Shown here piece after piece: positions 2,845 to 64,000 of a stretch of DNA of 64,000 bases. The notes beneath the pieces were generated by a model. It had not been told where the DNA came from. It did not search any database and saw only the letters and a program-made list of their open reading frames with translations. Position numbers and translations under genes: made by a program. Position 1 is the stretch's first letter. Each line of letters begins with the position of its first letter. The stretch comes from Geosiphon pyriformis uo1 (lineage: Eukaryota > Fungi > Glomeromycota). The stretch is taken from the NCBI GenBank assembly GCA_016748015.1, contig JAAOMT010000201.1, positions 504,224 to 568,223 on the forward strand. The letters are read 5' to 3'.

Positions 2845-5800
2845 ATTTATTTGTCGATAGTTAGATTTAACTATATTCTTATTTTATTCTTTTCCATTTA
2901 AATGAAATTATGATTGATACCATTTACGATTCTTAAAGAAAATATGAAAAGCTTATAAACTAATTTCAATCTTTAATTACTCAGCCAAGCTAAAATCTGT
3001 TACCAAAATTGTCTGAGATTTTAGAAAATAGAATTTTTTTTCTATTAAGAGTAAATAGAAATTTTTTATATTTTCTCTAATTTAATATAGAATATAATCA
3101 TGTTCTTTAAATTGTTGTTTTCGACCTAAAAAGTCAATAAAGAAAAAATTGAAGCTTGCTAAAAAATGGGGTAATAAAAATTATTTTAAATTAAACGTTG
3201 AACCTTAAAATTTTTTATTTTGCAATATTTATTGTTATCGAAAGATAAAACATTAAATTAAAGAAAAATAAAACTTTTATTTTATTTTAAAAAAATAACT
3301 TTCAAATATTTTTTCAATCAATGAAAGTATAAGAATGAAAGTTTAATATTTGATTTTAAAACAAAAGAGATATTATAATATTGCTATATATATATATTTT
3401 TCTATATTCAACTAATTGGAATCAGTATATATAAAAAAATTCAGAATTAAATTTTAAAATATTGTGACATTATTGAAAACTTGAAACAATCTGTTGATAG
3501 GCAAATTTTTGTTAAAATCATCAATGGAAATATCGTTTCAAGTTTTCTTTGAAATGCCATTTGAGCTTACAAAGTAATTGAAGATTTTGGTTTCAAAGTA
3601 CCATACAAAAATTGTCATATCAGCAACAGTATAAAATGGCCGTTTTCTTTTTAAAAAAATTTATGACTAAAATTGATACTGAAAATAACCTTTTCGGATC
3701 ACGGATAATTCTAAATATTATTATTAGCAATTTTTAAAGGGCATTTTATCAATAAATAGAAGAAAAGTTTAACGTTTTCCAGAAATTGTAGTAATCTCTA
3801 AAATCACGACCATCATAAGCTAATGAAAGTACCAATAATATTTATATTATATAAAAATTTTCGTACAAACAAATAGTTAGAAAATTAAAGGCTTGATTAA
3901 ATACATGAATAAGATGTAAAGCAAGAATTTCAATTTTTTTATCATTTAAATAATTTCTTTTAGATCATATTTTATTTGAAAGTGTATCAATGTTGCCTCA
4001 TGAAAAAAATTTTTCTTGTCATTTGGTTTATTATCCTCAGATTTCTAGTATGATAGAAAGTTTCTAATTTTTGTTGATTCGACAAAATATATTATTTATA
4101 ATCAAAAAATTGTGGATCAAGCTTTTAAAAGTTTTCTTTCGAATAAAACTGAATTTTTTATTATTGACCAGGTTCAGAACATAACGAATTTTTGTTTATT
4201 TGGAAAAATGACATTTTGTTTTAAGGGAGGCTCCACAATTTTAATAAACTATTATTCAAATTTTGAATAACAAGATGAATATTCATTTAGAAAATTGTTT
4301 GTGCGAACCTTTAAATTTAATTAAGCATTTTCAAAAAAATTTGAAATTTCATTATACTACGTATAATACTATTTTGAATATCATAATAAAGTGAAAGAAA
4401 TTGTGCCAGTGACAATTAAATTCCAATTGATTCTGCAAGACATATAAAAATTTGATTTTTTCACACACATTGGCTATGAAATCAAATATTTTCCTAAAGA
4501 AACAACAAAAATCCGAATAAATATTTGGTAAATCAAAGGCACACGAGAATACTACAATATTGCTCCTATCCCCTCCTATCAATTAGAACAAATATTATTT
4601 TGAAAGTCAAAATAAATGGCAGATACTTTAAGAACGATATCAATGAAGTTTTTATAACGTTTAAATTTGTTATTTTATTGAAAACTAATCTTCAAAAAGG
4701 CATGAAATTGAAACCACAATATTCCCTGCTTAATAGCCCTTGTTTTTATTGAAGTTGTTGAATTTTAATTAAATATAAAATTCTTTCTCACTTTCATCAT
4801 GATCAAAATGAAACCCAATTTTTTCAAATATTTTTTTTTCATTTTTGTTATTTCCGGTTCAAGAACTTTGCATGTTCAAACAAAGCCTATTTATGAAAAT
4901 TCGGCTAATAACCTTGAACAGAATACCATTCCAGTTAATTATTCTCTTGAGCCAGATACTGAATTTCCAAAAGAATTGGACACTAATAACGGTTGGATCC
5001 TAAACGAATGAACTAACTCGTTCATATTTCATTAATTTGACCATTTTCATATGAAGATTAAAAATTTTGTACACTTTTAGAACCATTAAATTCTTACGAC
5101 AATCAACTTGGGTTCAATGCTGGAATTCCTGATGATGTTGCATTCACACCATCACTATCACTTTTCAACCAACTCGATCAAGAATTCAGTAACACTTTGC
5201 AACCGCAGACTGTATCCGACAATTTGTTAATGCCTTCTATCATGGCTTCCCTCGTTGATGAAGGAAGGGAAAGTCAAGTTTCAAAACAGCCTAAAGATAG
5301 CTCTACATTTACCGTGGAAAATGGAAGCAATGAATTGAACCAAGTCTCTTTTTCGCAAGATAGTTTACCAAATATAGCAGGTAAGGCTCTAAGTTATCTG
5401 ATGAATTTAATTAGAGAATGCAATTTTTAAATACAGTTATCAATTTTGCCGCAACTTTGAAATTTCCTCGATTCAGAAAGCTCTTTTACAGAAAATGAAA
5501 CGGGACCTGTGGCATTGAATTTCGGGGAACTCAAGAAGAATTTGGGTGAATTGTACCACAATTTTAGAAAAGATCGAGATCTATTGAAAAATGATTCAAA
5601 GGAAGTTCGAGATTTAGGAAATTATGCACTCATGGCGAATGCTGCATACTGCAATTCTGGACGTATTCCAATAGAATATCGTAGTAAGATTTTATCAAAA
5701 TCTCATTTGTTTTATTTAAAGGTATTAATCAGATATTTTAAGCTAATTTAATTGATCCATTTCTCAAACCAGTCAATCAAAACTTCAATTATGTAGAGAT

Positions 5801-7215
5801 CGCAGTTATATTTGCTAGCTACCAAAGTTCATACGATAGTTTAATGAAGAACTATGACGAATTCTATGTGCCGTACCCAAAACATCTAGATGAGATAAAA
5901 TTTTTACAATCATTTGGAAAGGATAAAAATATATTGGTCAATTCAGAATTTTATCAGGATTGGTTAACGGTGCAAGAAGGCTTTCTTAAGAAGATTAGCG
6001 AAATGACAGTTGGGAATCCGCTTGCTGTTATTCGATTTATCGGGCATGGTGTCGGTGGAGGTTTGTTCTCAACTTTAAAGTCAGTTAGAAATTTAAACTT
6101 TTATCATTAAAAATGAAATTATTATCCTCTAGTCTACGCAATGTTTGCGTCTTTATCATATCTTGCAAGATATGCTGAAAAGGACATTGCGGTATATACT
6201 TACGGCCAACCACGAATGGGAAACGGTAATTTTCGTACTATAATCGATAAAATCATATACCATAAAAAAGGGAAATATCAAATATTTCGTGGTACTCGAT
6301 CTGATGATCCTGTTGTTCATTGGCCGACTAATTACGAGTCCGATCCCGGTGCGCCAAAATCAAGTAAAGTGAAACCTTATACGTTTCTTCATCATCAAAC
6401 CGAATATTTTTTCGAAGAGGAAACTGCCCGTGTGTATAGGTGTAAAATACCATGGTTCAAAAATGAAAATGAAGTATGTATATTTATCACTTTTGCGTCC
6501 GGGTTTAGATGATTTTATAAAGATAAATATAAATTTCTTGAAATGGTTTTTTTTCTTTCACTTTTAGTCTTGTGCCAACGGGAAAAAACTGGACCCTAAA
6601 GTTGACAAACATAATGGGCCTTATTTTAATGTTACAATGGGCCAATGTGTACCCTATGAAAGTCCTTACGGCATGAAGTCAACTAAATATTTTGCATGAA
6701 TTTATTTATTACTAATTTTATCAGGTTGAGATTTTTTTCAAGACAATAAATTTTATGAAACAAATATTTTAATATTAGCACTAATGAAAATTTTCTCAAT
6801 CCTTTCAGCTTACAAATCACCATCAATTTCTATTGAGAGAAATCATGTTTAACCAAATTAATATTTAAATATTGCGCTAACAAATTCTTCTTCTAAATTT
6901 ACTCTAGTTTTTAGCAATTAAATTTTTTACGAAAAAGTTTATTTGTCATAAAAGAGGTTATAATAATGTCAATTTTACCTTAAACAAATTCTATTTTATT
7001 TTATAGATATATTTCTTTTATCAAATGAAATATTTGGCCATATGTTTATAAAGATTTTAAAAACTTGAAATATTAAATTGTAGGATAATAAATTTAATCT
7101 AAAGTATATATTTATTCTTTCTTCGATCTAGAATCAGTTTAAGGTCACAAATACATTTATTTGCCTATACAATATAAAAATATATAAAAGTTCGGTGTAT
7201 TTGATCAGAATTCAA
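2845..7215 (+). repeat. Segmental duplication unit 1 (lipase-like gene A with flanks)
   Basis: Flanks align with 11555-16100 (direct) and ~25300-29113 (inverted), e.g. ttactcagccaagc...gtctgagattttagaaaatagaa near 2977 and 11561; aaggtcacaaatacattt near 7141 and 16014. Confidence 0.85.
4799..6699 (+). CDS. Secreted class-3 lipase-like protein, copy A (~486 aa), predicted catalytically inactive (GHGVGG)
   Basis: Exons 4799-4991, 5081-5380, 5477-5683, 5773-6060, 6133-6473, 6568-6699; all introns GT-AG and frame-preserving. N-terminal hydrophobic signal, long acidic linker, then Lipase_3 motifs: ANAAYC, FIGHGVGG|VYA, YTYGQPRMGN, DDPVVHWP, LHHQTEY, CANG...DKHNGPYF...GQC. Confidence 0.9.
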
Positions 7216-9959: not shown

Positions 9960-11550
9960 GCAAAACATTGTCTAGAACTCGACAATATAATGTATATTTT
10001 TTGACAGCAAAAACAGCAGCTTTGTCCAAGAAATTTTGTATATAAGTACTCATATATCAAGCAAATCAACGTGTATAATAATAAATATTAACAAGACCAG
10101 AATATAATGTCAGCAGAACAATTGTTTTGAGACTTTTACATGAATAATTACAATAAAAACATGCGTATTACCTTGCTTTACCCCAAAAATAACTCAATAA
10201 ATTTGAGACTTTAAATTGAAAATACACATATATTTAGCTGTTTCAATAATCTCTTATAAGTGGTTTTTTTGAGAAGTAAAATCAGATTAATGAGCAAAAA
10301 TTATACTTGTATAACATTAAAAATTCATTGGATTGAAAGCATGTAATTTGCAAGTGTTATATTGCTTTGTCAAATGGTTTAATCATAAGCCATATTCTTC
10401 TAGAATTTATTTATTACTCTTTTATTTTATTATGTCATTAATACCAATAAATATCAGATTGTGTAAAGATTTATTAGGCATTTTGCCATTGCAAAGAAAT
10501 AATTGCTTACTACCATCTTTTAAATTTATTTGTGAAACTATGAGAGCATTTTTAACATAAGCCTTATGGTTTCAAGTGTTATTAAACATGAAAAGTGCAA
10601 TTTTTTTAAGTGTATTCATTTAAAAATTAGAATAGTTTTATTAATTACTTGGCTTATAAGATCTTGGTTTGTCTACTAGCCATTTTGATTGAAGCCTGAA
10701 TGCATATTAGCACAAGATTCAATATTAAAAAGTCAATTATCCTTAGAAAGCAAATTATAGCTAATTTTTTTCTTTTTAAAAAGATGAAAACGCCTAATTA
10801 ATTTACAGATAAACTCATTTACATAAATATTGAGCCCTTGTGACTTGTGATGAAGCTAGTTTTTTTCTACTGAACCTCAGATCTTATTAATTTCATCGTT
10901 GACATAAAAAATAATTCATCATAAATAATTGAAACAAGTTAAAAACATTTGGTAAGAATATTGGCAAAATGTTTTTGTTACATATTCTGTACTTTATATA
11001 CTGCAATCTGAGACTATAGATTGGTTATTTGTTGTAAGAATAAGCCACTATATCTTCACATTTACAACCATTAAAATAAATGTCTTTTAAATAATTCTTA
11101 TAATTCCAACCAAGGTAATGTAGCTATTTTCAAGCCATTTTTTTAGTAATTGTTTCTCGTGTTTCAATTCCAAAAGAAGAAATGGCTTTATTCTCAATAA
11201 ACTTAATAAATTGTTGAACAGTTATGATGAATTTGTTTGTCTGCAAATATTGAGTAACACACAGTTTGAAACCTTCATCGAATAGAAGTGACTTAATTTT
11301 AGAATGTTATTCTCGACATAATGTAATTACCTCACCTTTTTTTGACCATTGTTTGGCCCATGAACAAATAATCTGTGCATGCCATAGACCCTGATGGACA
11401 AGTATGTTACTAACAGAAAGCTTAAAAAACCCTTGATCTTGAATGAAGTGAAGAAATTGAATCATTATTCAAAGCTGCACATTGGAGTTTTTCTTAGTAA
11501 GATATTGAGAGATGCTAAAGTAAACAAATTATCTTTTTCATCGCTTGATT
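9960..11550 (-). mobile_element. Decayed Tc1/IS630-like DDE transposase of the fungal family with WLxxLG / DGHERxDV / HDE / FDN motifs
   Basis: Minus strand: HSKIKSLLFDE...LHYLGWNYKNYLKDIYFNGCKCEDIVAY...IYDELFFYVNDE...KSQGLNIYVNEF...ALFMFNNT*NHKAY.KNAL...DF.SQK..L.EII; many stops, mostly from G>A/C>T changes. Confidence 0.8.
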
Positions 11551-11554
11551 CAAT

Positions 11555-14500
11555 TTTTAATTACTCAGCCAAGCTCGAATTGTTTACCAAAAATGTCTGA
11601 GATTTTAGAAAATAGAAATTTATTATTATTAAGAGTAAATAAAACCTTTTTTTTTGATTTACTCTAATTTAATAAAAGGTAGAATTATCTTCTTTTAAAT
11701 TGTAGCTTTTCGACCTAAAACAAAAATTGCAGCTTGCTAGAAAATGAGCACCAATAAATATTATTTTAAATAAAAATTTGAAATTTTGCAATATCGAAAA
11801 TAAAACATTGCATTGAAGAGAAAAAAATATTTTCTAAAGATTTTATGCATTTGTCAAAGTGAAAAGAAATTTGTATAAATAAATAGCAAACAAGCTATTT
11901 GTCAGATTTAAATTAACTTTCAAAATTTTTTTCAATCAATGAAAGTATAAGAATAAAAGTTTAATATTATAAAAGATATATTATAATATCGTTATATATA
12001 TAAATTTTCTATGATGAATTTAAGAATCTGGTTCCAAAGTGCCATAAAAAATTGTTATATCATGCAACAGAATAATAGAGTCGTTTTCTTTCTATAAAAT
12101 TTGTGGCTAAAATTGATACTGAAAATCACCTTTTCGGATCACGGATAAAAGGAATGAATTCTAAATAATATTATTAGCAAATTTTTATTAGGAATTTTAT
12201 CAATAAATAGAAGAAAAGTGTAGTAATCTCTAGAATCACGTCCATCATGAGCTAATCCTCCTCTCATAGTACATTAATGAAAGTACCTATAATATTTAAA
12301 TTCTTTGATAATTTCCTTACAAACAAAAGGTTTGAAAATTAAAAGCTTGATTTGATACATGAATAAGATGTAAAACTAAAAAGCTTCAATTTTTTTATCA
12401 TTTAAATAATTTCTTTCAGACCATATTTTATTTGAATAAGTATCAATTTTGCCTCATGGAAAGATTTTTTCTTGTCATTTTGTTTATTATTCGTCAGTTT
12501 TTTAGTTTGATATAAGGTTTCTAATTTTTGTTGATTCGACAAAATATATTATTATAACCAAAAAATTGTGGAACAAGCTTTTAAAATTTTTCTTTCGAAT
12601 AAAATTTTTTTTTTCATTATTGCATTGAGAACATATCGAATTTTTGTTTATTTAGAAAAAATAAAATATTCTTTTAAGAAGGACTCCACAATTTTATCTG
12701 AAGTTTTATTTGAATTTTTGAAGAACAAGAGGAAAATTTTTTTACAAAATTGCTTATGCGAACCTTGAAATTCAATTAAATTTTTTTAGAGCTTATCTAA
12801 TTCCGAAAATTTTTTTACCAGGTTGTCGCATTATTTTTATAGTTTAATTAAGTGAATGAAATTGTGCGAGCGACGATTCAATTCCTATAATTTGGCAAGA
12901 CATAAAAACTTGATTTTTTCACACACATATCGGCTAGAAAATCCTAAAGAATCAACAAAAATTCGCATATTTTTTAGTAGATCAATCAATTTAGAACAAA
13001 TATTATTGTGAAATGTCAATATAAATGGCAGGAACTATAAGAACGATATGAATGAAGTTTTTATAACGTTTGAGTTGGTTATTTTCTTGAAAACTAATCT
13101 TGGAATCTCATATCTCATCTTCAAAAATGACATGATATAATTTATATTTGAGACCTAAAAATTCCCCTCTTATTTTAATTGAAGTTGTTGTATCTTAATT
13201 AAATATAAAATTCTTTCTCGCTTTCATCATGATCAAAATGAAACCCAATTTTTTTAAATATTTTTTTTTCATTTTTGTTATTTCCGGTTCAAGAACTTTG
13301 CATGTTCAAACAAAGCCTATTTATGAAAATTCGGCTAATAGCCTTGAACAGAATACCATTCCAGTTAATTATTCTCTTGAGCCAGATACTGAATTTCCAA
13401 AAGAATTGGACACTAATAACGGTTGGATCCTAAACGAATGAACTAACTCGTTCATATTTCATTAATTTGACCATTTTCATATGAAGATTAAAAATTTTGT
13501 ACACTTTTAGAACCATTAAATTTTTACGATAATCAACTTGGGTTCAATGCTGCAATTCCTGATGATGTTGCATTCACACCATCACTATCACTTTTCAACC
13601 AACTCGATCAAGAATTCAGTAACACTTTGCAACCGCAGACTGTATCCGACAATTTGTTAATGCCTTCTATCATGGCTTCCCTCGTTGATGAAGGAAGGGA
13701 AAGTCAAGTTTCAAAACAGCCTAAAGATAGCTCTACATTTACCGTGGAAAATGGAAGCAATGAATTGAACCAAGTCTCTTTTTCGCAAGATAGTTTACCA
13801 AATATAGCAGGTAAGGTTCTAAGTTATCTGATGAATTTAATTAGAGAATGCAATTTTTAAATACAGTCATCAATTTTGCCTCAACTTGAAATTTCCTCAA
13901 TTCAGAAAGCTCTTTTACAAAAAATGAAATGGGACCTGTGGCATTGAATTTCGGGGAACTCAAGAAGAATTTAGGTGAATTGTACCACAATTTTAGAAAA
14001 GATCGAGATCTATTGAAAAATGATCTATATTTAGGAAATTATGCACTCATGGCGAATGCTGCATACTGCAATTCGGGACGTATTCCAATAGAATATCGTA
14101 GTAAGATTTTATCAAAATCTCATTTGTTTTATTTAAAGGTATTAATCAGATATTTTAAGCTAATTTAATTGATCCATTTCTCAAACCAGTCAATCAAAAC
14201 TTCAATTATATAGAGATCGCAGTTATATTTGTCAGTAACCAGAAGTCATACAATAATTTAGTGAAGAACTATGTGGAATTCACTCATATGTCGTACCCCA
14301 AACCTCCAAATGAGGTGAAATATTTCCAATCATTGGAAGAAAATGTATTGGTCCATGCAGAATTTTATCGGGATTGGTTAACGGTGCAAGAAGGCTTTCT
14401 TAAGAAGATTAGAGAAATGACAGTTGGGAATCCGCTTGCTGTTATTCGATTTATCGGGCATGGTGTCGGTGGAGGTTTGTTCTCAACTTTAAAGTCAGTA

Positions 14501-16100
14501 AGAAATTTAAACTTTTATCATTAAAAATGAAATTATTATCTCCTAGTCTACGCAATTTTTGCATCTTTATCATATCTTGCAAGATATCCTAAAAAGTACA
14601 TTGTGGTATATACTTATGGCCAACCACGAATGGGAAACGAAAATTTTCGTGCTATTATCCATAAAATCATTTACTTGAAAAAAGGGGCATATCAAATATT
14701 TCGTGTTACTCGATCTGATGATCCTGTTGTCCATTGGCCGACTAATTACGAGTCGGATCCCGGTGCGCCAAAACCAAGTAAAGACGTTGCGGTAAAACCG
14801 TATACGTTTGTTCATCATCAAGCCGAATATTTTTTCGAAGAGGAAACTAACAATGTGTATTTTTGCAAAATACCATGGTTTAAAAGTGAAAATAAAGTAT
14901 GTATATTTATCACTTTTGCACGTGGTTTAGGTGATATCATAAATATAAATTTCTTGAAATGGTTTTTTTCTTTTACTTTAGTCTTGTGCCAACGGGAAAA
15001 AACTGGACCCCAAAGTTGATAAACATAATGGGCCTTACTTCAATGTTACGATGGGCCAATGTGTACCTTATAAAAGTCCTTACGGCATGAAGTCAACTAA
15101 ATATTTTTCATGAATTTATTTATTCAGGTGGAGATTTTCTAATATTAGCACCAATGGAAAATTTTCTAAATCTTTTCAGCTTACAAATCACCATCAATTT
15201 CCATGGAGAAAAAGCATGCCTAAATAAAATCAATATTTAAATATTGCACTACTAAAATATTTTTCTAACTTTACTCTAGTTTTTAAGCAATTAATTTTTT
15301 TCCAGTTTTAATCAAATATTTCGTGATTTTAATAATAATGGTCATATACGCATAAAAAATGATATTCATCACAAAATTTTGCAATTTATCTTTTGACCTG
15401 AAAATATATGATAAATACGAATAGAAAATTTATAAATAAAGTAATATCATGTATGTCTTGAATGAATTTATAAGTTCTATAGTTTGAAGCAATTTTATGT
15501 TGAGAAGCTGAAGATAGTCTTTAGAGATGGAAAATGAGTCTTGCCAGTCATTCTAGTTATTTAAACTAAGAACCGTGAGATATTAGGATTTCAAAATATT
15601 TTGTTCGAACTCGATTCCGATTTTCCCATGTCACTCTATTTATATGTGGAAGATTTGAGATTACTCTAGGCTCTCAAAATCACTATATGAAAGAATCCCT
15701 TTTAAAGATATAAGAGTTATCTTTAAGCAACATTGTGAAAATAATATTTCATTTTGCTAGCTCAGTATTATAAAAAACATGAGAACCATTTTGAAAAATT
15801 TATAATATAAATAAAATCTTTGACATATCATTTTATGAAAAGTCTATGTCCTATAGCAGAGGTTATAATAATGGTCAATTCTTAATTTGAATAAGTGTCA
15901 TTTGGTTTCATAGATACATTTCCTTTATCAAATGTATATTTGGCTATTATTTGAAATATGATTACAAAAATTTAATGATATTTTAAATCAGTCAAATATA
16001 AATACTATAAGTTAAGGTCACAAATACATTTTTTTGCCTATACAATCTGAAAAAATATTAAAAATATATAACAGTTCGGTGTATTTGACCAAAATTCAAT
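11555..16100 (+). repeat. Segmental duplication unit 2 (lipase-like gene B with flanks)
   Basis: Direct copy of unit 1 at an offset of 8430 bp in the 5' gene part; homology starts right at the edge of the transposase relic. Confidence 0.85.
13229..15113 (+). CDS. Secreted class-3 lipase-like protein, copy B (~484 aa), predicted catalytically inactive (GHGVGG)
   Basis: Exons 13229-13421, 13511-13810, 13906-14100, 14190-14474, 14547-14896, 14982-15113; same intron phases as copy A, open frame to TGA at 15111-15113. Confidence 0.9.
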
Positions 16101-17936: not shown

Positions 17937-19446
17937 ATGGCACCCCTGCAATTCTTTCAGGCTTTATCCGATGATTTTGGAAATTTACTGGATAGCCAAA
18001 ATTTTTCTGATGTTAGGATTGTTATTGGAGAAGCGCCTAATATTAGAACTTTTAATGCTCATTCACCAATTTTAGCAGCAAGATCTCCATATTTTGCTGT
18101 AGCACTCTCTAGTAATGGGATTAAAAGAGAAAATAATGCCATAATATTCGCTAAACCTAATATTTCTCCTAATATTTTTGAGATAATTCTCAGGTAAAGG
18201 TTTTCATTTCCTTTAAAGTATTTTGGCCAAAATAAATTTATATGTTTTATTTCCTGTACAGATATATTTATAATGGCGAGATTTCTCTTGATAAACATGG
18301 AATACCTACCATTTTAGAATTGCTTGTTACCGCTGACGAGCTTATTTTAGAAAACTTAATTGAACACCTTGAAGCCTATTTGATTGAACATCATGTAAAA
18401 GAGCTAGAAGAAAATTTCGCCATTTTGCAGAAAACTTCATTTATGCATGATTCTTTCAAAAAGTTACAAAATTTCTGCACCGAAATAGCTGCTAACAATC
18501 CAGCTATAGTCTTCAACTCGCAAGATTTTACCTCCCTTAATGAAAATGCACTTTCCTCAATTTTAACTCGGGATGACCTAAACATAGAAGAATCTGAAAT
18601 ATGGGAAAAGATTGTGGAATGGGGAGTTGCTAAATTGGATAACAATATTCAGACGAAGAACGCTCTTTACTGGACAGATGAAAATTTCAACGCCTTTAAG
18701 GAATCCATTGAAAGACTTTTACCTTTAATCCGGTTCTTTAACATATCTTCAGTTAACTTCTATCACAAAGTAAAACCATTTGCGAGAATCTTACCTGGAA
18801 CTTTATATGAAGATCTTTTACATCATTATCTCGTACCGGGCAGTTATCAAGAGTCTGTAGACGCTCAGCCATTACGTTGTTCTCGATCAAATATTGATTC
18901 AAAGATTCTTCAATCGCATAATATAAAACAGCTAGATCATTGGATTCAGGGCAAAGACGAAAATACCCCTTTTGAAAATCAACTTGGAAATGATTTTCAA
19001 TTGTTACTTCGAGGCAGTCGAGACGGATTCACTCCAGCCGATTTTCATCGATTATGCGATGATAAAGGAGCAACAGTTACCGTAATCAAAGTGAAAGGAA
19101 CTGGTCAGCTAATTGGCGGCTATAACCCACAATCTTGGCACTCTCGGGATGAATATTTGGAGGGAAAAGGAAGTTTTATTTTTTCCCTTGGAGATGGCAA
19201 AGCTGGAAATGGTAAACTTAGCAAATTTATTGAAGGACATGGACCTTATGGTGGGCCAAGTAATGGACCCTATTTTGGATTGGGCAGTATTGAATTGTCT
19301 GGTAATGACTTTAAAGTAGTCCAGGGTGCTATTGTAGAAAAACAAAAGAATATGAGCATGTTATAATGCCTGGAATGGAAAATCACCCGAGGAAGTTTTT
19401 TTCCGAGGAGTATGAAGTTTTTCAAATTATAAAAAGAAAAATTTAG
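17937..19446 (+). CDS. BTB/POZ-BACK-TLDc domain protein (~480 aa), apparent 1-nt frameshift near the 3' end
   Basis: Exon 1 17937-18193, intron 18194-18261, exon 2 from 18262. Motifs SDV.IVIGE..FNAHS.ILAARSPYF, LRYIYNG, IWE..VEWG, LLLRGSRDGF...FH..CD.KG.TV..IK, GGYNP..W. The canonical TLDc end (EEYEVFQI..*) lies in another frame after ~19315. Confidence 0.88.
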
Positions 19447-20289: not shown

Positions 20290-20925
20290 CATTCAATTTA
20301 CTTTATTTTTTCATGAAATTAATAAACAATTGTCTTGCTAACAATATATTTATTCTTAATATAGTCACAATTATTGGACTTAATCCAATATTCCACCATG
20401 GGAGTGCAAATAATCCTCGTTTTTGGTGTAGACCATCATTCGGAAGATTCACCACAATATCATTTTTGTAAGTAACTCGAGCATATATATTTGTGGCTTC
20501 ATCCAGAGCTTGAGAAAAATTTCAATTCCCTAATTCTTGACTGGCCGTAAGTAAATAGCTGTAATGAAATATGTGGTGTTCATTTAAATTGATAAAACTC
20601 ATGAGCAGCAAATGCTGTATAGACTACAAGATTAAAAAAGCAATTTTGAGCTTGGAAAGAATATTAGAAATCATCAAAATAATAAATCACCAGCACTCAT
20701 GCCATGTACAATAAAAGTTGCTGTGGGAATAGCATCGAATCTTTGTTTCTCTATTTCTTCTAGGATACTTGAAAAATGATAATGAAAATGCTAGTATTGA
20801 TCTAAAAATATTTTATCACTTTGCTTTTGCATATAATAGATATGCAGATATCTGTTCAGATGATAATAAGAGATTGTTTCAGAAGTAGAGAATTTGTTTA
20901 TGAAGACCTCCAATTCTATTTGATG
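20290..20925 (-). pseudogene. Old class-3 lipase-like pseudogene (not in ORF track)
   Basis: Minus strand: ..FIVHGMSA | intron 20690-20624 | VYTAFAA...LFTYGQSRI..NIYARVTYKNDIVVNLP...DYLHS.VEYWIKSNNCD; same intron position after the elbow as in the other lipase-like genes; stops and frameshifts. Confidence 0.75.
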
Positions 20926-23099
20926 CTAAATAAGTGAATATAATTTAGAATTTTGTCTATGGAAAAAACTTGAACTATATTCTTTGATTTAAGTCAAAAA
21001 TTAAAATGATAATTGAAATAAAAATCTTGGCAATTAATCATATTTATATATTAGCTACCTATAATGAATCTTCTAAAGAATAGGCTAATTTGGCATACGA
21101 GGCATATTTTTAAAAAAGTTTTTAGTATCAAATGTTATATAATTCTTCACAGAGCTTAATTTTTACTTTTATATTTTGATTTCATTCGTACCCTTCCAGG
21201 CCCGAAAAAAATCACAGAAACCTCAAATACCTCAAGAAATTTTACAATTTTATTAAAATATGTTGAGAAATCTCCTAGATTCTCTCATATTTAACATAAT
21301 AAAAATATGTTAGACCAGAGGCTGATATTTCCTGAGAAAGTAGACAGAGCTGTAGATAATACACTAAAGAATTTTCAAAGATATACATGGTATGCAATGA
21401 ATCTTATTGTTTGAAAGATGATATGGTAAAATCTATCAAATTTTGTCGATACGTTGTTAGAAGGTTTATTAGATTATCGAAAAAACTTTTCTATTAAAGC
21501 TGCAATAAAATTGATTGGATCTAAAATAATTTTTATAGATCGTGAAGAATCAATAGATTCGAAAGATTTTAGCCTCATCATAAAAACAAACTTTCGAATA
21601 TCAATATACAAAAGAGGCAAAAGTATATAAACTATTTTTTTAGAATGATATATTTAATTCTGCAAGCCATCAAACTAACTGATATTCGAGATATTGTAGC
21701 TATTTGGGACCAGTTTGTATCCAACTATATTTCTTTAAAAATTTTATTTGACTTTTGAAATTCACACAATAATCTATGTCACCTTAAAAATCCTGGAATT
21801 AATTACTCTTCCATTAAGTCTTTGACCCCAAATTGAAATCGTGGGAAATCGGAAGTTTGCACAATATGTGAACTACCTTTACACACAAAAAAACATACTA
21901 TCTCTTGCCATGACAAAGATTATCAAGCTTAAATTGCATTTCTTCGGAATTAATAAGTAGATTGAAAGTAGATTATATTATTTATGAGGGTCATTCTACT
22001 GGAATAAAAGTAATTTATGATAGAAAATGCATGTGAAAAATGTGAGACACTTAGATTCATTGTATTTTAGAGTACTTGAACTTAATCAAAAAGATTTTAT
22101 TCAGGAAAGTGAGGTACTTTAAAATTTCGAAAAGAAAAAATTTGTTTTTATAAACTCATTTGGAAATCTTTATTTTAAAGGAATGTAATAATAAGTTTAA
22201 TTTTAAAAATTTTCTCCCTCACAATAAAACTTATTAGGGTGTTATGATGAAAAGATGCATCAATTCGTGCCACCCATGGAAACAGTTGGTATAACATGAA
22301 TAGAAATTTGAATACATTTCATATAAATTTTATTTAAGAACTTTTTTTCACATCAAGTACTACTGGATCGCGAGAAAAAACTTTATAATTCTTTCAATCG
22401 ATTTGCTTAATTTAATATTCAATAGATCCTGTTTTTTGCTAGCACAACTCATACGAAACTTTTATTATATAAATAAAAAAATGAATGTATCAGCTTATCT
22501 GAAAGTATTGCCCATTAAAAATCAGCTCTCATATAGGTATAATAATTATTAAAATATTATTATATTAAAAGTATTTTTTTTGGTACAAATATCAATTTCA
22601 CTTTCTTAACTATTTTATAAGCAATTACATGTTTCTTCTAAAAAAAAAGTTTACCAATGTATGCTGAAAACCAGTTACAGCAGCAAACAATGGTCATTAC
22701 ATCTTACCTGTACTAGTTTGAGGTAAAACTATATTCAATTCCATTCCATTGCAGACAATATTAACCCACATTTAATAAATATTGATGTGGGAATCTAACC
22801 TTTATAAAGTAAGTTAATAATTTCTTTTATATTTAAGCGTTCTAAGCTTAGCCCTTTCGGGAACATAATTTTTGACAAAATTATAGATTGGGCTCAGATT
22901 TAAAAGCAAGATCTTTCTTTCTTCCCTTACAAAATATTCAAAACTTGATAATCCCTTAATCTTGTTTGAAAATTATGTCTCTAACTTCATCAATTGAAAA
23001 CCAAACTTCACCTTTGACTTGATTGAAGGAGAATTTTTCGGAATTCTTATTCATCAAAAGTTGCTGAATTGATGAAAAAATATTTTAAACACAAACAGA

Positions 23100-23400: not shown

Positions 23401-25831
23401 AAGTAATTAATTAGAAATATCTAAGTTTACTTAAACATTGAAAAACAATTAGCTCACTGGTTGAATTATTTCAGTTTGATGAATTCCACAGTAGAAAAAA
23501 ATAAAATAACAAAGTTAATTGAAATCTATTTTTGTCAATTAATTTTTTCTCTAAAAAAATAGTGGTTTATTCGTGTAATTTCAAAATTCAGTAGCTTTTT
23601 ATTGATACAATTTCTACTTGATAGCTTTTATAAAAATGGTTTTATTAAATTAAATGCTATATCGAACTATACTATCAACATGCTTTTAATTTATTTGAAG
23701 CCAAACTTCTAATGAAATTATTCATGTGTTTTTTAATTAATTAATTGGAAATAAAATGTGAGTTAAGGATTTTTTATTTGATAATAATAATAATAATAAT
23801 AATAATAAAGTGATTTAATGTGAGTTTTTGGAATTTCACGTGATATCAAGTAAATTAACCTTAGGAAACAATCACAAGCCAAATAGTTTAATTGGTAAAA
23901 ATACAAATTTTGCAAAAATTTTAACTTGCGGGTTTGTTAATTAAAAAATTCAACAACGTGACTTTGAAAAATTTTATAAATTTTCATAATAAAACAATAT
24001 ATTTCTTTTAGTTTGAATATAGCTTTTTATAAATCCGACTTGAAATAATATTAGTCTTCTTTTAAATCTATAAAATTACCGATAATGTTAACGGAAAAGA
24101 ATTATGAAAAGAAATTAAATATAATTTATGACACTTTATATTCTGAAACATTTCTAAAATATATTAATAATCAGAAACAAAAATATATGTATCACATTAT
24201 GAAATAGAGACTTGGAGTAGTCAATAAATAAAATAAAATAAACTAAAAAAGATAGAAAAATGGTATTCCCATTCGCAATTCACTTCAATTCAATTCATAA
24301 TTTACTTTAAAAATCTCAAGTCTTTTTCAAAAAAAACCGACTGTAAAATTGAATAAACTTTACTTGAAAGACATTTATTTTACTTTTTTTAAAATTTGAA
24401 TTTTTGGACTATTGTTTTTGCATTTTAAAAACTTGTACAGATACAATATCCAAAAAAAGTTCAATTGTAAATAGCAAAAACTATTTTTACTTTTAAAGAA
24501 TTCTATTAAATAAATAAATATATATATATATACAGGATATAATTTATTAACATTATGCTCGTATCAGAGAGTCTTATGGTACAACCATTTTACTTGTAAT
24601 AACAATATTCAAGTAGCTAATCGAATTTATTATAGTATTATTGGGTTAAAAATTTAAAATAAAATAAGTGGAAAAACTATTGAATTGTAAAATGAGAATT
24701 AATAAAAGTCATGTTTAATTTTGGCAAGTTTTCAATGAAAACAGAATACTTATGGAATTCAATATTAGGATAATGGTATTTTAAATTTTAATTTGATACC
24801 TTTTAAGAGAAATTTCAAAAAATTGCTTATTTATTAAAAATGAATTAATATTACCTGGTTATTCAGATTAACTCAATGAAGCTAGTCAACTGAAAATAGC
24901 CTTTTTTTTAATGTATGATTTAATAGATATTTAGTCATAGAAGATGGATGAATTCAAGTTTTCTTTATGTGCACAATTTCAATTTTATATTGATGAAACT
25001 AAATTTCAATCGTACGTTAATTATCATTATTAAAAAATTAATATACAAGAATTTGCTTGATTATTGGACAAAAATTTGTAAATACGCGAAAATTAATGAC
25101 CATATCTTAATTCTAGCTTTTACTTTTTTTAATAAGCTTCTTGTTATTGTTTATCACAATCAGTCATTAAGTAGCCAGAGTAAGATCCAGCATGATTTTT
25201 AGGATCAAGTGACGATTAATTATTAGTGGAAAGCTGTTTTCAAGTAATGAGAAAGTTGAGGATAGTAAAATTTTTTAAAAAATTAAGTTTATTTCGTTTA
25301 TTTTAATAAAATATCTCACGGTTCCTAGTTTAAATGACTAGAATGACTGGTAAAATTCATTCACCATATCTACAGACTATCTTCAAGTTCTCAAACATAA
25401 AATTATTTCAAACTGTAGAACTTATAAATTTATTAAATCGATACTTGATATTGATTTATATAAAAATTTTATATTCCCTTTTATCATATATTTTGAGCTC
25501 AAGATTTTGTCATTAAGATTCATGTTTATACGTATATGAATATTTTTTTAAAATCACCAAATATTTGATTAAACCAGAAATATATATCAATTGCTTAAAA
25601 ACTAGAATTCCTAAATACATGGAGCTCTTTTATCTCATTTATCTGGATGAATTTGATGAGCAAAGTTAGAAGAATTAATTTGGTAGAGTACCATATTGAT
25701 TTGAATAAAAAAGTCTTTAGAAATAATTTTCTCAATTAAAATTGATGGTAATTTGTAAATTGAAAAGATTCAGAAAAATTTCACTAGTGCTGATATTAAA
25801 ATATTTTGAATAAAATCTCCATCTGATAAAA

Positions 25832-27623
25832 TTAGTTATAAACTGACTTCGTGACATAACAACCTTTGTAAGTTACACATTGGCCCATTGTAGCATTAAA
25901 GTAAGTTCCATTATGTTTGTTAACTTTAGGGAACAGTTTTTTCCTATTGGCACAAAACTAAAAGTAAAAGAGGAAAAATCATTATATTTATCTTTAGGAA
26001 ATCATCTAAACCTGGTGCAAAATTGATAAATATACATACTCCATTTTCATTTTTGAACCATGATTTTTTGCAAAAATACACATTGGTAGTTCCCTCTTCG
26101 AAAAAATATTCGGCTTGATGATGGACAAATGTATACTCAAGTCTGCACCTGGATTTGGCGCGCCAGGATCATCAGCTCGAGTAACACGAAATATTTGAAA
26201 TGTCCTTTTATCATCGTCAAGAATTTGATCGATAATGGCACGAAAATCTTCGTGGTTGGCCGTAAGTATATACAGCAATGTCCTTTTTAGGATATCTTGC
26301 AAAATATGATAAAGATGCAAACATTGCGTAGACTAGAGGATGATAACTTTATTTTTTAATGATAAAAGTTTAAAGTTCTAAGTAAATTTAAACTTTGAGA
26401 ACAAACCTCCACCCAATAAATCGAACATGAGCATACTGATTCGAAGCTGTCATTTCGCCAATCTTCCGAAAAAAGTCCTCTTGCTGCATGGACCAATAAA
26501 CCTTCCCCCCTTCCAAGTTTTTGTAAAAATATTACCTACTCTGGAGGTTTGGGATAGCCCATCTGATCGACTGTATAGTGCTTTATTAAACTATCGTATG
26601 ACCTTTTGTCACTGGCAATTATAACTGCTATCTCTATATCATTTAAGCTTTCATTGACTGGTTTTAGAAATTAATCAATTAAATTAGCCTAGAATATCTG
26701 ATTAATATCTTTAAATCAAATAAATATGATATTAATAAAACTTACTACGATATTCTATTGATATGCGTCCAGAATTGCAGTATGCAGCATTCGCCATGAG
26801 TGGATAATTTCCTAAATCTCGAACTTCCTTTGAATCATTTTTCAATAGAACTCGTTTCTTTTTAAAATTGTCGTACCATACATCCACAGTCTTCTTGAGT
26901 CCCCCAAAATTAAGTGCCACAGGTCCCATCTCATTTTCGGTAAAAGAGTTTTCTGAATCGAGGGAATTTCAAAGTTGTGGCAAAATTGATGACTGTATTC
27001 GAAAATTGCATTCTCTAATTAAATTTATCAGATAACTTAGAACCTTACCTGCTATATTTGGTAAATTATCTTGCGAAAAAGAGACTTGGTTCAATTCATT
27101 GCTTCCATTTTCCACGGTTAATCTATCTTCAAGCTGTGTTAAATCTTGATTTTCCTTTCCTTCATCAACGAGGGAAGCCATGGTAGAAGGCATTAACAAA
27201 TTGTCGGATACAGTCTGCAGTTGCAAAGTGTTACTGAATTCTTGATTGAGTTGGTTGAAAAGTGATAGTGATGGTGTGAATGCAACATCATCAGGAATTG
27301 CAGCATTGAACCCAAGTTGATTGTCGTAAGATTTAATAGTTCTGAAAGTGTACGAGTTTTTTAATCTTCACATGAAAATGCTTAAATTAATGAAATATGA
27401 AAGAGTTAGTTCATTCGTTTATGATCCAACCGTTATCAGTGTCCAATTCTTTTGGAAATTCAGTATCTGGCCCAAAAAAATAATTAACTGGAATAGCATT
27501 TTGTTCAAGATCATTAGCCAAATCTTCATAAATAGGCTTTGTTTGAACGTGCAAATTTCTTGAACTGGAAATAATAAAAATGAAAAAAAAATATTTGAAA
27601 AAATTGGGTTTCATTTTGATCAT
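25832..27623 (-). pseudogene. Inverted class-3 lipase-like pseudogene, copy C
   Basis: Same exon layout as A/B on the minus strand, but has an in-frame TAG in exon 4, an 11-nt deletion removing HGV of the elbow (~26412), a 36-nt deletion in DDPVVHWP (~26165) and further frameshifting deletions. Confidence 0.88.
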
Positions 27624-30600
27624 GATGAAAGTGATAAAGAATTTTTCTATTTAATTGAGATACAACAGCTTCAATAAAAATAAGAGTTACTATTAAGAGG
27701 GGAATTTTTTGGTCTCAAATATAAATTATTTCATGACGTTTTCGAAGATGAGATATGGAGATTCCAATATTAGTTTTCAATACAATAGAAAATTTAAACG
27801 TTCAACCATTTATAATTATTTTTGCTGACATTTCAGAATAATATTTTTTCTAATTGATAGTTAGGAGAAAAATTAATCGAAATAATCTTTGATCTATCAA
27901 ATATTCATCCGAATTTTTTTTGTTGATTGTTTAGGATTTCCTAGTCTACTTCATGCAGAATCAATCGGAATTTAATGGGCTACTGGCACAATCTCTTCAC
28001 ATAATTAGTATATCAAAAAAATTGAATAAAAATTGTGGAGCCTTTCTTAAAAGAAAATATTATAGATACTTTCATTAGTGCAACATTAGAGGATTGGCTC
28101 ATGATGGACATGTATTTAGAAATTGCTACTCGGGAAAAAGTTGCTATTTATTTGACAAAACACCCTATGGAAATTTGTTAATAATATATATTTAGGGATC
28201 CATTCTTTTTATCCGTGATCCGAAAAAGGTGATCTTCAGTAATTTAAATGCATCAATCTTAACCACAACTATATTAAGTTGTTGCATAATATGATAATTT
28301 TCAATGATATTTTAAATTACCTATTAAGTCAAAATGGCATTGCAAAGAAAATTTGAAACAATATTTCCATTGATATTTTCAACAAAGATTTACTTATCAG
28401 CAGATTGGGTCAAATATTGAAAGATATCAAAATATATAAGTTCAATTAATATAAAAGTAATTTTTATAATTAATATACATCTTTTTTAAATTTACTGATT
28501 CTAATTAGTTGATTATAGAAAATAAATATGATATAAACGATTTTATAATATTTCATTTATATTAATATAAGATAATAAAATTTTATTTTATATTGTTATT
28601 GATCGAAAAAAATTTTGAAAACTTATTCTATTACAGAAAAATTATTAGTCTTTTCATTTCAATATTGCAAACATTTCGAACTCGCCTGGTTGAATAAGAA
28701 TAATAAGATACAAATTGAATTAAAATAATTTTTGATCAAGGTTTATTGGTTCTCATTTTTTTTTTAGCATGCTGCATATTTTTATTTATTACCTTTTTAT
28801 GTCGAAAAACCATATGCCTAAAGAAGATAATTACACTTTATATTAAATTGGAGAAAATATAAAAATCTCTTCTATTTACTCTTTAATAGAAAAAAAAATT
28901 CTAATTTCTAAAACTTCAAACATGTTTGGTAACAAATTCGAGTAATTAAAGATTGAAATCAGTTTATAAACTCATTATATTTTTCTTTAGGCGTACATGC
29001 TATCGTTCGGCAAATGGCAAATCATTAAAATAGCTATCAATCATAATTTTATTTAAATGGAAAAAAGATACAATGGGAAAATAGTTAAAACCTTAACTAT
29101 CGACAGATAAATTTCCACAAAGTAATACGAGAGATAAATAAAATCGCCATCATTCTTATTATTGTGAAAAAGTCATTTTCTTAATAGCGGTAAATAAATT
29201 CTTCCAATTCCGGGAATTAGAAAAGATCTTTGGACTGTTGATAAAGCTGAACATCCCGAGCAAGTTAATTCATTGGTACGTATGAAACAATAATACGTAA
29301 TAAAAATTGTACCACCAGAAAATGGAATTTCGTACTTTGCTGCACAACTTTTTTAAGCCTTGAAAAGAGCACAAATATATGTACATGTAAATATGAGATT
29401 GTTTCCAAAATTGGAGTCTCATTCGGAAATGCTTTTAAGAATAAAGTCAAAATCTCGGATAGGTTATTAATGAAATCAGCATTGAATATTGGGTAACGAA
29501 AACTTAGTCGATCTCTTTGGATGTTTGAAATCATCGTTTAAACTAATTTTGTTTCTCGATTGAAAAAGCTTAAATATTTAATGGATTAAAGAATTGGGTA
29601 TATATATTTCTCTCCTTGACTGGTTATTTTCATTGGTTTATTAATTATTTATTAAACGAAACTCAAGGAATATAACTTTGATTTTCATGTAATCGTTTAA
29701 AACTTTGCAAGATTAAAATTTTAACATTTGCCATAACAGTATAATTATACAGTAAGAAAAAACAATATTTATCCAAAAAAAAAACAATTATTATTATTAT
29801 TAAAAAAACACCTTAATTAGTAAAATTAAACTCTAAAAGTTTTCGAAAATCAACCTTTACATGAATCTTCTCTTTAATTTTTTATATATAAAACTTGGGA
29901 ATTTGAAACCAAAATGAAAATGGATTATTAATTTTTTTCATCAACTTGATACAATATTATGTAAACAATATTACCCTTATCAGAATTTCAAAGAGAAACT
30001 CAAAAATTAAACAAGACACAAGATCGAAGATTTGATATTTAACAGAAGTTTAGAAGATATATATATGTATAAATTGAATTCCGGAAGTTTTAAAAAAAAT
30101 CATAGATTACGGAGTATACAAATGAATTTGATAAATTTGAAACATGGTCGTACATTGATTTAATAAATAATCAAAAGCAGTATTCTTTCTTAGCAAGAAA
30201 GAAGAGAAAATTTTAGTAAATTAGAATTAATTTTTTTTTTGCCAAACGATAAAAAGTTTTTGCATTAAATATTAATCTTGCCTTCTTTTTTATAGAAATT
30301 TTATATTTTCATATTTCTCAAATAGAATACCGCAGTCATGTATTGGATTTTTCGAACTTTTTATATTTGAAAATTTATGTGACGAAATGAAGTAAAGTTT
30401 GCTTCTTAAAAAAAGTTTTAAAAACTCGATTGTCGTAATAGAATTTGTAATTTAAATATTCTATTTAACCACTCGATAAACTGTATATCATTGTTTTTAA
30501 GAGACTGTCCAATATTTGGATAGTTCTAGAATTAAATAATTATATGAAAAATCAATGATGCTTACATATTTTAAATCCTTTATTATTATTATTATTATTA

Positions 30601-31217
30601 TTATTAATCACGATAAGTAGCATATTATGGATATATTTAAAACATAACATAAATATTCAAAATTAATTTTATTCCTGTTATATTTACACGAATCTGCAAT
30701 TTAAATTGAAAAGTTCTCTATAATTAAATTCAGCAAACAAATTGTCGAAAATGCATAATCTTTGTTCCTATTAGTATCCAATCTTTCAGTATAAAAATCT
30801 AATATTAGCAAATAGATTGAATGCTAACTATGGTAATATCAAATTTAAAAAGTAATTCCATCATTTGTAAATCGGTTGAGAAGCTGTAAAGTTTATTCAA
30901 AGCTTATCTAGTTACTCTTTATACGACATCATACATCATTAAACATGCATAATATGCCACAATTTCTCTTCTCAAAAAATTTTACCGGAAATTTTTCGTT
31001 TCTTGTTGCACTCATAATTCTGTACTCTATGAGTGTGGTACTTTAGCTTGTGATCACATTTGAAGAATTAGAACATAAAAAGAGCTGTAGTAAATTAGAA
31101 AGGATTATTGAAAACTCTGAAAGAAATCTCATGAAATACTTTAACCCCATAATTGAAAATTTAATTTAATTTACTTTTCCAACATCAAAAAAATTTATTT
31201 CCAAGGTTGAAATCAAG

Positions 31218-31622
31218 ATGGAATCGTATTCAAGTCTGAGCAATATTAAAATGAAAGATGCAGTGGTAATAAATGAATCAGGAGAACTTTCGCTAGAGTT
31301 ATATGGAATGTTAGTAATTGTATTATCGTCAACAATTAGTAATTCAACTGTAACAATGATGATTATTTGGATATTGAACCAAAAGACTTTAAGAGATTTG
31401 GATAATCGATTGGTATTAAACTTGTTGGTCTCGGATTGGTTGCAAAGTTTCGGCTTTATGATGAGTTTGAATTGGATAGCACAAGGACAAATTGATAATA
31501 ACTCATTTTGTGGTCTTCAAGGAGTTATAATAAATATTAGTGACATTAGTTCGGGTATGAAAACATTCATTCGTTATAATTATTAGCAAGATGTTTTTGA
31601 TTAAGCAATAATACCTTATACA

Positions 31623-31655
<33 letters not shown>

Positions 31656-32637
31656 GTTGTTGTTGTTGTTGTTACTATGATAGGTTTTTGGGCAACAGCG
31701 ATATGCCTTCAGACTTACCTAGCAGTGGTCCACGCCTATGAGCCAAAAAACTACCTCAAATTTTCAATGATAATCATATGGTCTTTGAGCTTTTTTCTCT
31801 CACTGCTTGGATTTGTGATTGGGAATCCAGGAGATCCTTTTTATAGGTCAGCAGGAGGAATGTGGTGTTGGATCGGCGAAAATTATGCTGGATATAGGAT
31901 TGGTTTTCATTATGGAATTATAGTAATGCTAGCTTTTATCATGTCGATTTTATATGGGATCATGTTTTGGATGTTGTATCGTTATCGTGGAAGGTTGCAG
32001 GAAAAATCAGCAAACGGATTGAAGTTGCAACGAATGAAAAAGGCATTGATTTTATATCCCGTTATTTATCTGATCATAGTTTGCCCTTTGGCATCAGGTG
32101 AGCTTAAACTTTCAACTAGCTTTTATTTTATTTTACTTTCTTTTATTTTGTACTACTACAAAAAACTCCCACTAATATACGTATAATATCATTAAAAGAA
32201 CGTTTTGTAGCAATATTTGGATTGCAAGTTAGCATGACATAGTAAGTCTACAGAGTTTTTATTTACAATTTCCCCTTATTTAAAATTCCTTTATTCCTCA
32301 GCTCACTAAATTTATTTCTAGTCACATAATAGCAGGAACCATCTTTACAGGAGCCGGTCTTCTTAATAGCCTGATATATGGATATACAAGATACTTGGCT
32401 TCCTCGAAACCCTTCCTAAAACATGTGCTTAAAAAAAACTCTGCATTATTTCAAAATGATTTAATAAGCGAACCCGTCTTATCATTAGACAACAATCAGG
32501 CCTCCTCATTTTCTTATCAGGAATCTCGTTCACAGACTGACCTAAGTAGCGTGAATATTTTAGAGAATTCAGATCCGAGAATTGCGGGAGATGGAGGAAA
32601 GAATTCAAATTTATTAAATATTAATCTAAATGACTAG
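31218..32637 (+). CDS. Git3/Gpr1-like (cAMP-receptor-like) 7-TM G-protein-coupled receptor (~369 aa)
   Basis: Exons 31218-31554, 31684-32097, 32199-32241, 32322-32637. Motifs LNLLVSDWLQS, FCGLQG...DISSGFW..AICLQTY, AGGMWCWI, LYPVIY...P, GLLNSLIYGYTR; seven hydrophobic segments. Confidence 0.85.
31623..31672 (+). repeat. Compound microsatellite (ATT)n(GTT)n in GPCR intron 1
   Basis: Directly visible tandem repeat. Confidence 0.9.
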
Positions 32638-33794: not shown

Positions 33795-35212
33795 ATGTTG
33801 AAATATTTTATCCATAATAAAAAATCTTTTAGAACACAAGAAATCCATTCCATTCTCTTTCTTTTATTGATATTAGCGATCCCTTTTTTATTTTTTCTAG
33901 TTATCAAAAATGTAAATAAATCTCAAGATATAGATAAAACAAAAAAATTTGTAAAATTCTTTCTTAACTATTCAAACTTGCTATCTCCTGAAGGGCCTAT
34001 AAAGAAAGATAATAATTATTCTCTAAGGGCGGCAAAACGATCTAATGCCAAAAGAAAAACTCCTAACAAGCGATTATTTGAAAAAAAATGGATTGAACGT
34101 CTGCACTTTGATGTTATAGCTCAATATGCAAACAAGCCTTATTGTGTTGATAGTGCGAAATTCGCAGTCGATTTACCTGAAATAAGTGGCAAATAAATTT
34201 AACAGTGAATAAAATATTTCTTCCAAAAACCATTTAAAGTAATCGCTATGTTACTTATATATCTTTCTAGGGAATATTGAAAAAGGACCATCAATATTTG
34301 ATTTCTTTCACATTGTTGGTTACTTTCGAGGCAAGCAAATAAAAGATTTGATAAAAAAGATTGAGTTACCTCCTTTTTTATTCACTTTTTTGATTATTTT
34401 AGGACCCGAAATCGGAAGAGAGCAAATGAAAGAACTTTCAGAAGTTGATACCAAAAGATTAACAAAAGGGGTTTGGGAGGTTAATTCTAAATGGGGAAAT
34501 TTTTTAAGACTTACAATTCGTAAGGTTTTCTTTCAACAAATATTGCAGCTCATGAGACAAAAGAAACCTGAGACCCTAAATCATATTAACTTGATAGGGC
34601 ATGGTGTTGGAGGAGGTTAGTAAAACTTTTTGATATCAAAAATCAGAATTTTAGCTCAATTCCATTTTAAATTGAATTTTAGTCTATGCTCAAATCTTGA
34701 GCATCTTATTGGATGATCATTTAAGCAATATTATGCCAGGGTCTACATATCACATCTCGATTTTTACATTTGGGTCACCAAGAGTCGGAAATTCTCAATT
34801 TGCAATGACCATAAATTTGAGTAATAAAATCACTCATTTTAGGTTCACTCACTCAAATGATTTTGCACCCCATTTCCCGGCAACTACTGGAAGAAACTAT
34901 TTACATTCTGAAGGAGAGCATTGGATTGTCCCAAAAAATTGTGATTGCCCATCTGACGAGGATTATACTCTTTATAACTGTCCAGGATATTCTCGTGATG
35001 ATCTAGACTATTACGGAGAAAATTCGGTAGGTTTTTTTATAATTTCGATTGAATTTCTATAAGTATTCAAAATATTTTATTTAAAATTTATTTGCTTATA
35101 TTTCGCTTAAAATACTTTTGAAAGAGATGCAATATTGGCACATTTCGGGCCTTATTTTTCAACTACAATAGGCAAGTGTGATAATTTTTATGATTGGGAG
35201 GTACATGCTTAA
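33795..35212 (+). CDS. Distant class-3 lipase-like paralog D (signal/anchor, GHGVGG), possibly frameshifted in the last exon
   Basis: Likely ATG 33795; exons ~33795-34185, 34271-34330, 34403-34615, 34683-35026, 35125-35212. Motifs AQYANKPYC, YFRG|P, LIGHGVGG|VYA, FTFGSPRVGN, NDFAPHFP, YLHSEGEHW. CNIG and AHFGPYF...GKC are in different frames. Confidence 0.75.
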
Positions 35213-63870: not shown

Positions 63871-64000
63871 CTGAAAAATTGAGAGGATGGTTAATATGGT
63901 GGGAGCGGTAAACTTTGAGGGCAATCTAAAATCTCTGATTTTCGAGCCCTACTCTTTTAGATAAAAATCACTTTCAAATATTTACTACTTCTACTACTAC

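Follow-up and report, generated by a model that had tools for sequence, protein, structure and literature searches.

Class-3 lipase-fold proteins with glycine at the nucleophile position form a large family in Geosiphon pyriformis

Analysis of a 64,000-nucleotide (nt), AT-rich stretch of the Geosiphon pyriformis uo1 genome (hereafter the window, with positions counted from its first nucleotide) revealed five copies of a pseudo-lipase gene, a relative of class-3 lipases (Lipase_3, PF01764) with glycine in place of the catalytic serine. Two copies (A and B) are intact, one (D) is damaged and two (C and an old relic) are dead. A locus on contig JAAOMT010000201.1 of assembly GCA_016748015.1 is identical to window positions 21218-45212. 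Geosiphon belongs to the Glomeromycota and harbors intracellular Nostoc (PMC13315312); it is the classic example of a cyanobacterium engulfed by a fungus. Copy C is additional to the copies named in a preliminary description of this DNA. The copies and their main sites are as follows.

4799..6699, plus strand: copy A, intact pseudo-lipase gene G9A89_004587, 486 amino acids (PF01764 at 5.5e-16; fold model; equals public protein P0151)
5820..5945, plus strand: oxyanion/lid segment of A (approximate bounds), FAS-Y substituting for FRG[T/S], hypervariable in the comparison with B
6048..6050, plus strand: nucleophile position of A, Gly326 (GGT) replacing serine, from alignment to solved lipases
6306..6308, plus strand: triad Asp388 of A, kept
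6610..6612, plus strand: triad His458 of A, kept
13229..15113, plus strand: copy B, intact pseudo-lipase gene G9A89_004588, 484 amino acids (Lipase_3 match; equals public protein P0152)
20322..21152, minus strand: relic, frameshifted pseudogene (DNA 78% identical to G9A89_010732/010734)
27623 to about 25830, minus strand: copy C, A-type pseudogene, patched model G9A89_004590 (no Pfam match)
33795..35212, plus strand: copy D, distant paralog carrying a membrane anchor at its N-terminus, with the last exon frameshifted (exon-by-exon alignment to two paralogs)
35138..35139, plus strand: site of a 23-nt deletion in D, compared with two close paralogs

Copies A and B consist of six exons each (A: 4799-4991, 5081-5380, 5477-5683, 5773-6060, 6133-6473, 6568-6699; B: 13229-13421, 13511-13810, 13906-14100, 14190-14474, 14547-14896, 14982-15113) with GT-AG introns, and the spliced models match the public proteins exactly. 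The A protein starts with a signal-peptide-like N-terminus, continues with a pro-region rich in N, S, E and Q up to about residue 195, and carries the Lipase_3 domain thereafter, ending 28 residues past the histidine. The PF01764 profile check that the preliminary description had proposed gave 59.2 bits for A and 65.7 bits for B against a cut-off of 22. Outside the window, the closest paralog of A is G9A89_014172 (L002 9584-12183, on another contig), which has the same block upstream and agrees with A in every intron position; the signal-peptide stretch is missing from its annotated model. The only indexed sequencing run, probably of DNA, contains a 0.42 share of the sequence words of A and gave no contig over 30900-35500, the region of D.

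The glycine elbow described earlier was recovered in A, B, D and the relic. The motif GHGVGG, for which no match is expected by chance, lies at 6042-6059 in A, 14456-14473 in B and 34597-34614 in D, and in the relic, on the minus strand, VHGMSA occupies 20709-20692 (glycine codon 20703-20701); its relatives G9A89_010732/010734 carry GHGMSA. In the alignment, the elbow glycine of the copies (14462-14464 in B, 34603-34605 in D) falls on the catalytic serine of GHSLGG in solved lipases. A phase-1 intron after the last elbow glycine is common to A, B and D, and the next exon resumes with VYA, giving the usual elbow and helix. The Asp motifs lie at 6306 (A), 14720 (B) and 34859 (D), the His motifs at 6610, 15024 and 35141, respectively. 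Retention of both residues, as previously claimed, thus holds for A and B, where both are in frame; D keeps the Asp, while its His is out of frame if the homologous splice sites are used. The reported absence of FRG[T/S] from A (IFAS) and B (IFVS) was also borne out, the corresponding region of B being FVS-N. A stretch reading FRGT at 6285 in A was rejected as the oxyanion motif, as it is the strand ahead of the Asp.

The exons of D span 33795-34188 (or 34185), 34271-34330, 34403-34615, 34683-35026 and 35125 onward. The first intron has a GC donor where the paralogs have GT. Because the alignment to paralogs fixes a GC-AG intron at 34331-34402, the oxyanion motif of D is split as FRG|PE, and the oxyanion residue is gone from this copy too; the GC donor is common to paralog P0030 (L009 10197-10275), and P0012 has GT. 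The 23-nt deletion lies between the Cys and His codons of the last exon, so that with homologous splice sites the His codon (35141-35143) and the whole AHFGPYF motif are out of frame and the product ends in RCNIGT...QV*. An in-frame route to the His exists only via weak non-homologous splice sites. The deletion may be an assembly error. The NCBI model G9A89_004591, which fuses D to a G-protein-coupled receptor, was judged to be two genes merged by the annotation and was rejected: the receptor-like gene terminates at a stop of its own (32635-32637), and D has its own anchor-bearing start. The fused model also skips the strand exon and the His of D. Directly upstream of D, the separate seven-transmembrane receptor-like gene occupies 31218-32637 (plus strand; Dicty_CAR 4e-9, 7tm_1 weak), with TTA/TTG microsatellites in an intron.

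Copy C has several frameshifts, a stop, an 11-nt deletion that removed the elbow and a 36-nt deletion that removed the Asp motif. The preliminary view that frames are intact throughout therefore did not stand: only two of the five copies in the window are clearly intact, D bears its deletion, and C and the relic are pseudogenes. Copies A, B and the inverted C sit in duplicated blocks of about 4 kb (2844-6928, 11549-15584 and 25310-29113), A and B belonging to a shared tandem duplication. As the blocks include long upstream non-coding DNA, these copies arose by segmental duplication. The copies evolve by birth and death.

The fold of A was modeled with a mean predicted local distance difference test score of 90 for the domain; its superposition on Rhizomucor miehei lipase 3tgl gave Z 27.4 and a root-mean-square deviation (rmsd) of 2.2 A over 233 aligned residues. 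Yarrowia lipolytica Lip2 and R. miehei lipase scored Z 27-28, EDS1-family proteins Z 18-20. Hydrophobic N-termini (residues 8-18 of A and B, mean 2.25; a 19-residue stretch in D, mean 3.13), four to six N-glycosylation sequons and four Cys are consistent with export of A and B and with a type II-like membrane anchor in D, as predicted from sequence. The four Cys stand at positions where R. miehei lipase has disulfides.

We scored a nucleophile-blind profile built from the exon after the elbow against 1.84 billion representatives and added further searches. The result is one clade of 127 domains, a sample from the best 150 clusters rather than a census; a long-branch chytrid sequence falling inside the clade was excluded from this number. 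Every clade member looked up belongs to Geosiphon, and for these sampled members the family is Geosiphon-restricted, with more than 100 domains in one genome. No Gly-type relative from another species of Glomeromycota was named by the homolog searches and the exhaustive profile search, in which some matches carry no species assignment. A search for the elbow-plus-intron pattern gave six metagenome matches, none of them a lipase, and the Atlas returned generic Lipase_3 clusters only. The Logan proteins P0073 and P0171 (GHGLG) were rejected as members, both falling outside the clade.

At the nucleophile position, the 127 domains carry Gly (104), Ser (11), Arg (4), Asp (3), Ala (2), Cys, Asn and Phe (1 each), whereas 53 of 55 sequences outside the clade carry Ser. 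A majority of GHS elbows among the paralogs, the outcome that the preliminary description had set against its proposal, was not seen. An oxyanion Thr/Ser occurs in 10 of 120 clade domains, as against 41 of 48 outside (p 2e-22); no Ser-bearing clade member has one. The Asp position is acidic in all 127 domains (124 Asp, 3 Glu). The His is kept in 83 of 98 and replaced in 15, by Asn in 11 of these, also inside the A clade. Family-specific residues near the site are a Tyr at nucleophile+5 (76%) and a Thr before the Asp (97%). The clade alignment holds no family-specific Ser or Cys column able to replace the nucleophile; the Ser of the relic-type GHGMSA, tried as a substitute, sits at +2 and is confined to one subclade. 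Paralogs only about 30% identical keep open frames, intron positions, the Cys pattern and the glycine, encoded by all four codons.

Several public models of the family are imperfect. Many are truncated at one or both ends, P0001 and P0003 combine two or three domains, perhaps through the merging of neighboring genes, and P0012 (L008 10972-11116) enters a GAT-repeat intron, proper splicing of which yields an intact His exon. Arrays of three to nine Lipase_3 domains at L003, L004 and L005 mix Gly and Ser members.

Selection was assessed from the ratio of nonsynonymous to synonymous substitution rates (dN/dS), in regions that were picked after the data had been seen, as were those of the lid comparison. 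From the elbow to the C-terminus, A and B compared with P0002 gave 0.27-0.28 (p about 1e-6), well below 1; in the first half of the domain the ratio was 1.2-1.6, not different from 1. For D and its paralogs the values were 0.26-0.42 and 0.53-0.69, respectively, and for the whole A/B gene 0.65. The catalytic residue has thus been lost while the core half stays under purifying selection. Since the glycine is a genome-wide mark of the family, uses all four GGN codons and accompanies a core under purifying selection, it is not decay, in agreement with the preliminary description. Comparison of A with B shows 11 differences in 429 intron sites against 27 in 120 nt of the lid, and 21 of the 48 residue differences fall inside one 40-residue window (0 of 20000 shuffles). 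In the lid dN/dS is about 1.1, with the synonymous rate (dS) raised too, and surface variability reaches past the lid.

An ancestral Ser-to-Gly change common to A/B and D had been proposed. All four third bases are used in the Gly codons at this position, and all nine Ser codons read in the family are AGT or AGC (AGY), one step away from Gly; across A, B and P0002 together, AGY accounts for just 30 of the 105 codons for Ser. Arg, Asp, Ala and Cys, most of the remaining residues at this position, are single-step neighbors of GGN, and Asp and Ala are not neighbors of AGY. Together, the uniform Ser codons and the neighbors of GGN favor Gly as the old state and Ser as a repeated reversion; the Ser-type member P0031 is nested inside a supported Gly clade. 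In a tree built without the elbow columns, at least 4 and up to 10 changes are needed, several Ser members sit at the unresolved base, and Ser is also found in the sister of the A clade; a single origin of all non-Ser members (monophyly) was rejected (p 2.5e-43). A single ancestral change is likely but not proven from the sequences, and independent losses of Ser in A/B and D from an AGY ancestor are possible.

Among known systems, the Geosiphon family is closest to the fungal class-3 lipases and feruloyl esterase (PF01764; 3tgl, Rhizopus 6a0w, Y. lipolytica Lip2, Aspergillus niger FaeA), with which it shares the fold (Z 25-28, rmsd about 2.2 A over 230-245 residues), the layout of signal and pro-region followed by the domain, the triad Asp and His, the Cys pattern and the motif TxGxPRxGN. 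It differs from them in the Gly nucleophile position, the lost oxyanion Ser/Thr, a VHxGF His that is mostly Asp or Asn, the Tyr after the elbow, the HxGPYF tail and more than 100 copies in one genome. Neuroligins, neurotactin, glutactin, thyroglobulin's C-terminal domain and insect yolk proteins likewise combine a nucleophile-free fold, often with the His kept, with secreted or surface binding (PMC3531081); however, they are small families of animals derived from cholinesterases or pancreatic lipases, whereas the Geosiphon family is a hugely expanded set of fungal Lipase_3 proteins under birth and death. The analogy to plant EDS1/PAD4/SAG101 drawn earlier extends to function, a class-3 lipase fold without hydrolysis, and to a structural match (Z 18-20). 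It goes no further: those proteins have an EP domain and are nucleo-cytoplasmic, while the Geosiphon proteins have no EP domain, are predicted to be exported and are structurally closer to fungal lipases; no close kinship is implied. HOD, AqdC and MKS1 also keep the His-Asp pair with a dispensable nucleophile, but belong to another subfamily, and the His is not invariant in Geosiphon. Dead alpha/beta-hydrolases are a known kind; the literature searched yielded neither a fungal Lipase_3 pseudoenzyme family of comparable size nor, the genome paper aside, any account of serine loss in Geosiphon lipases. The 2021 genome paper reportedly noted the Lipase_3 expansion.

Class-3 lipases need the serine to form the acyl-enzyme. 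Two independent catalytic parts, the nucleophile and the oxyanion side chain, have gone from most of the sampled domains. Annotation as lipases would suggest lipid digestion, yet the lipase mechanism is not available to about nine in ten of the sampled members, and this reading is thereby reversed. On the sequences and the fold model, we consider it somewhat more probable than its opposite that A and B, together with D before its recent 3' lesion, are secreted or membrane-anchored, catalytically dead class-3 lipase folds acting by binding, which keeps the role suggested in the preliminary description as the best reading, with serine-free His/Asp chemistry as the main rival. The ligand would most likely be a lipid or another acylated molecule, held in the former active-site groove under the variable lid. 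Nucleophile elbows have a strained backbone geometry; with hydrolysis dropped, this strain probably favors Gly at the position. Asp and His might be retained because they help in packing or hold a polar head group, and lid variation could tune the choice of ligand. There is precedent for ligand holding in this fold: the Ser-to-Ala mutant structures 1gt6 and 2bjh, as far as their records go, contain oleic acid and ferulic acid, respectively. His is often retained among non-catalytic alpha/beta-hydrolases (PMC3531081). Several points weigh against a binding role. An acidic residue in 127 of 127 domains and a His in 85% are also what a catalytic dyad would be expected to show, three of the five window copies are broken or damaged, and the signal peptide was judged from hydrophobicity alone. 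Moreover, lid variation can be explained by patchy gene conversion without positive selection: with lid dS raised too, conversion that spares the lid accounts for it as well as positive selection does.

The constancy of the acidic residue and the His (83 of 98) would also suit a serine-independent enzyme, in which the general base acting on water or a substrate hydroxyl is the His-Asp pair and Gly makes room for water or O2, by analogy with cofactor-free dioxygenases, decarboxylases and lyases of the alpha/beta-hydrolase fold. HOD and AqdC dispense with the nucleophile (PMC10548524), MKS1 has Ala at the elbow (PMC3531081), and the Tyr at nucleophile+5 and the Thr before the Asp are conserved near the site. 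This proposal, already raised in the preliminary description, is weakened by the repeated loss of His in otherwise conserved members, His being the one invariant active-site residue in ESTHER, and by the loss of the oxyanion residue throughout the family. Arg, Asp, Ala, Cys, Asn and Phe are tolerated at the nucleophile position, and a large set of lid-variable copies fits a binding repertoire better than a single reaction; we regard such an enzyme as unlikely. Slightly less likely still is a non-catalytic protein-binding or surface role (adhesin, lipase-inhibitor decoy or scaffold) in which the pocket is unimportant, as in neuroligins and the lipase domains of the EDS1 family. The type II-like anchor of D, the surface variability past the lid and the frequency of adhesion proteins among dead alpha/beta-hydrolases (PMC3531081) speak for it. 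Pfam, however, finds Lipase_3 only and no partner domain, most differences between A and B cluster at the pocket entrance, and the pocket Asp and His are kept. Damage to three of the five copies, the whole-gene A/B dN/dS and a genome consisting of 64% repeats (PMC9453076) would agree with a mostly non-adaptive history, in which segmental duplication within a repeat-rich genome multiplied a dead lipase whose copies now decay under weak selection. The core dN/dS of A/B and the values of the D-clade genes largely refute this reading already, and the distant paralogs have kept their frames, intron positions, Cys pattern and Gly; we consider it very improbable.

If the pseudo-lipases act by binding, their ligands could, speculatively, be bacterial glycolipids or envelope lipids, supplied by Nostoc or others, for recognition, sequestration or uptake without cleavage. 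A doubtful but more far-reaching idea is that this very large family, with its conserved core and variable lid, forms a diversified recognition repertoire on a dead lipase fold, through which Geosiphon would perceive or sequester the lipid or glycolipid signatures of bacteria, Nostoc among them. It would then represent a fungal receptor-like system for choosing and controlling the endosymbiont, with lid variation setting specificity. The sole basis for the link to Nostoc is that the family is seen in Geosiphon alone, whose closest relatives are thinly sampled. Natural Gly and Ser paralogs, together with the near-identical pair A and B, whose differences lie mainly in the lid, allow a direct test of the function.

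The remainder of the window contains further features. An exon of a BTB-BACK-TLDc gene, a family typical of Glomeromycota, lies at 18242-19366 (plus strand). At 41177-42124 (plus strand), a single exon encodes a 315-residue protein with a signal-peptide-like start, a repetitive body rich in P, S, N, G and K and a duplicated HNGENNG; it has no Pfam match and is possibly a cell-surface protein. Two open reading frames at 54374-55129 and 56413-57264 (plus strand) look like high-mobility-group (HMG)-box proteins by eye, with no Pfam match at 0.1; the former contains the motif PNGFLIF and ends in an 18-nt tandem repeat encoding FEDNFQ. Close to the end of the window, at 62203-63925 (minus strand), three open stretches of 129-138 residues coincide with higher GC content.

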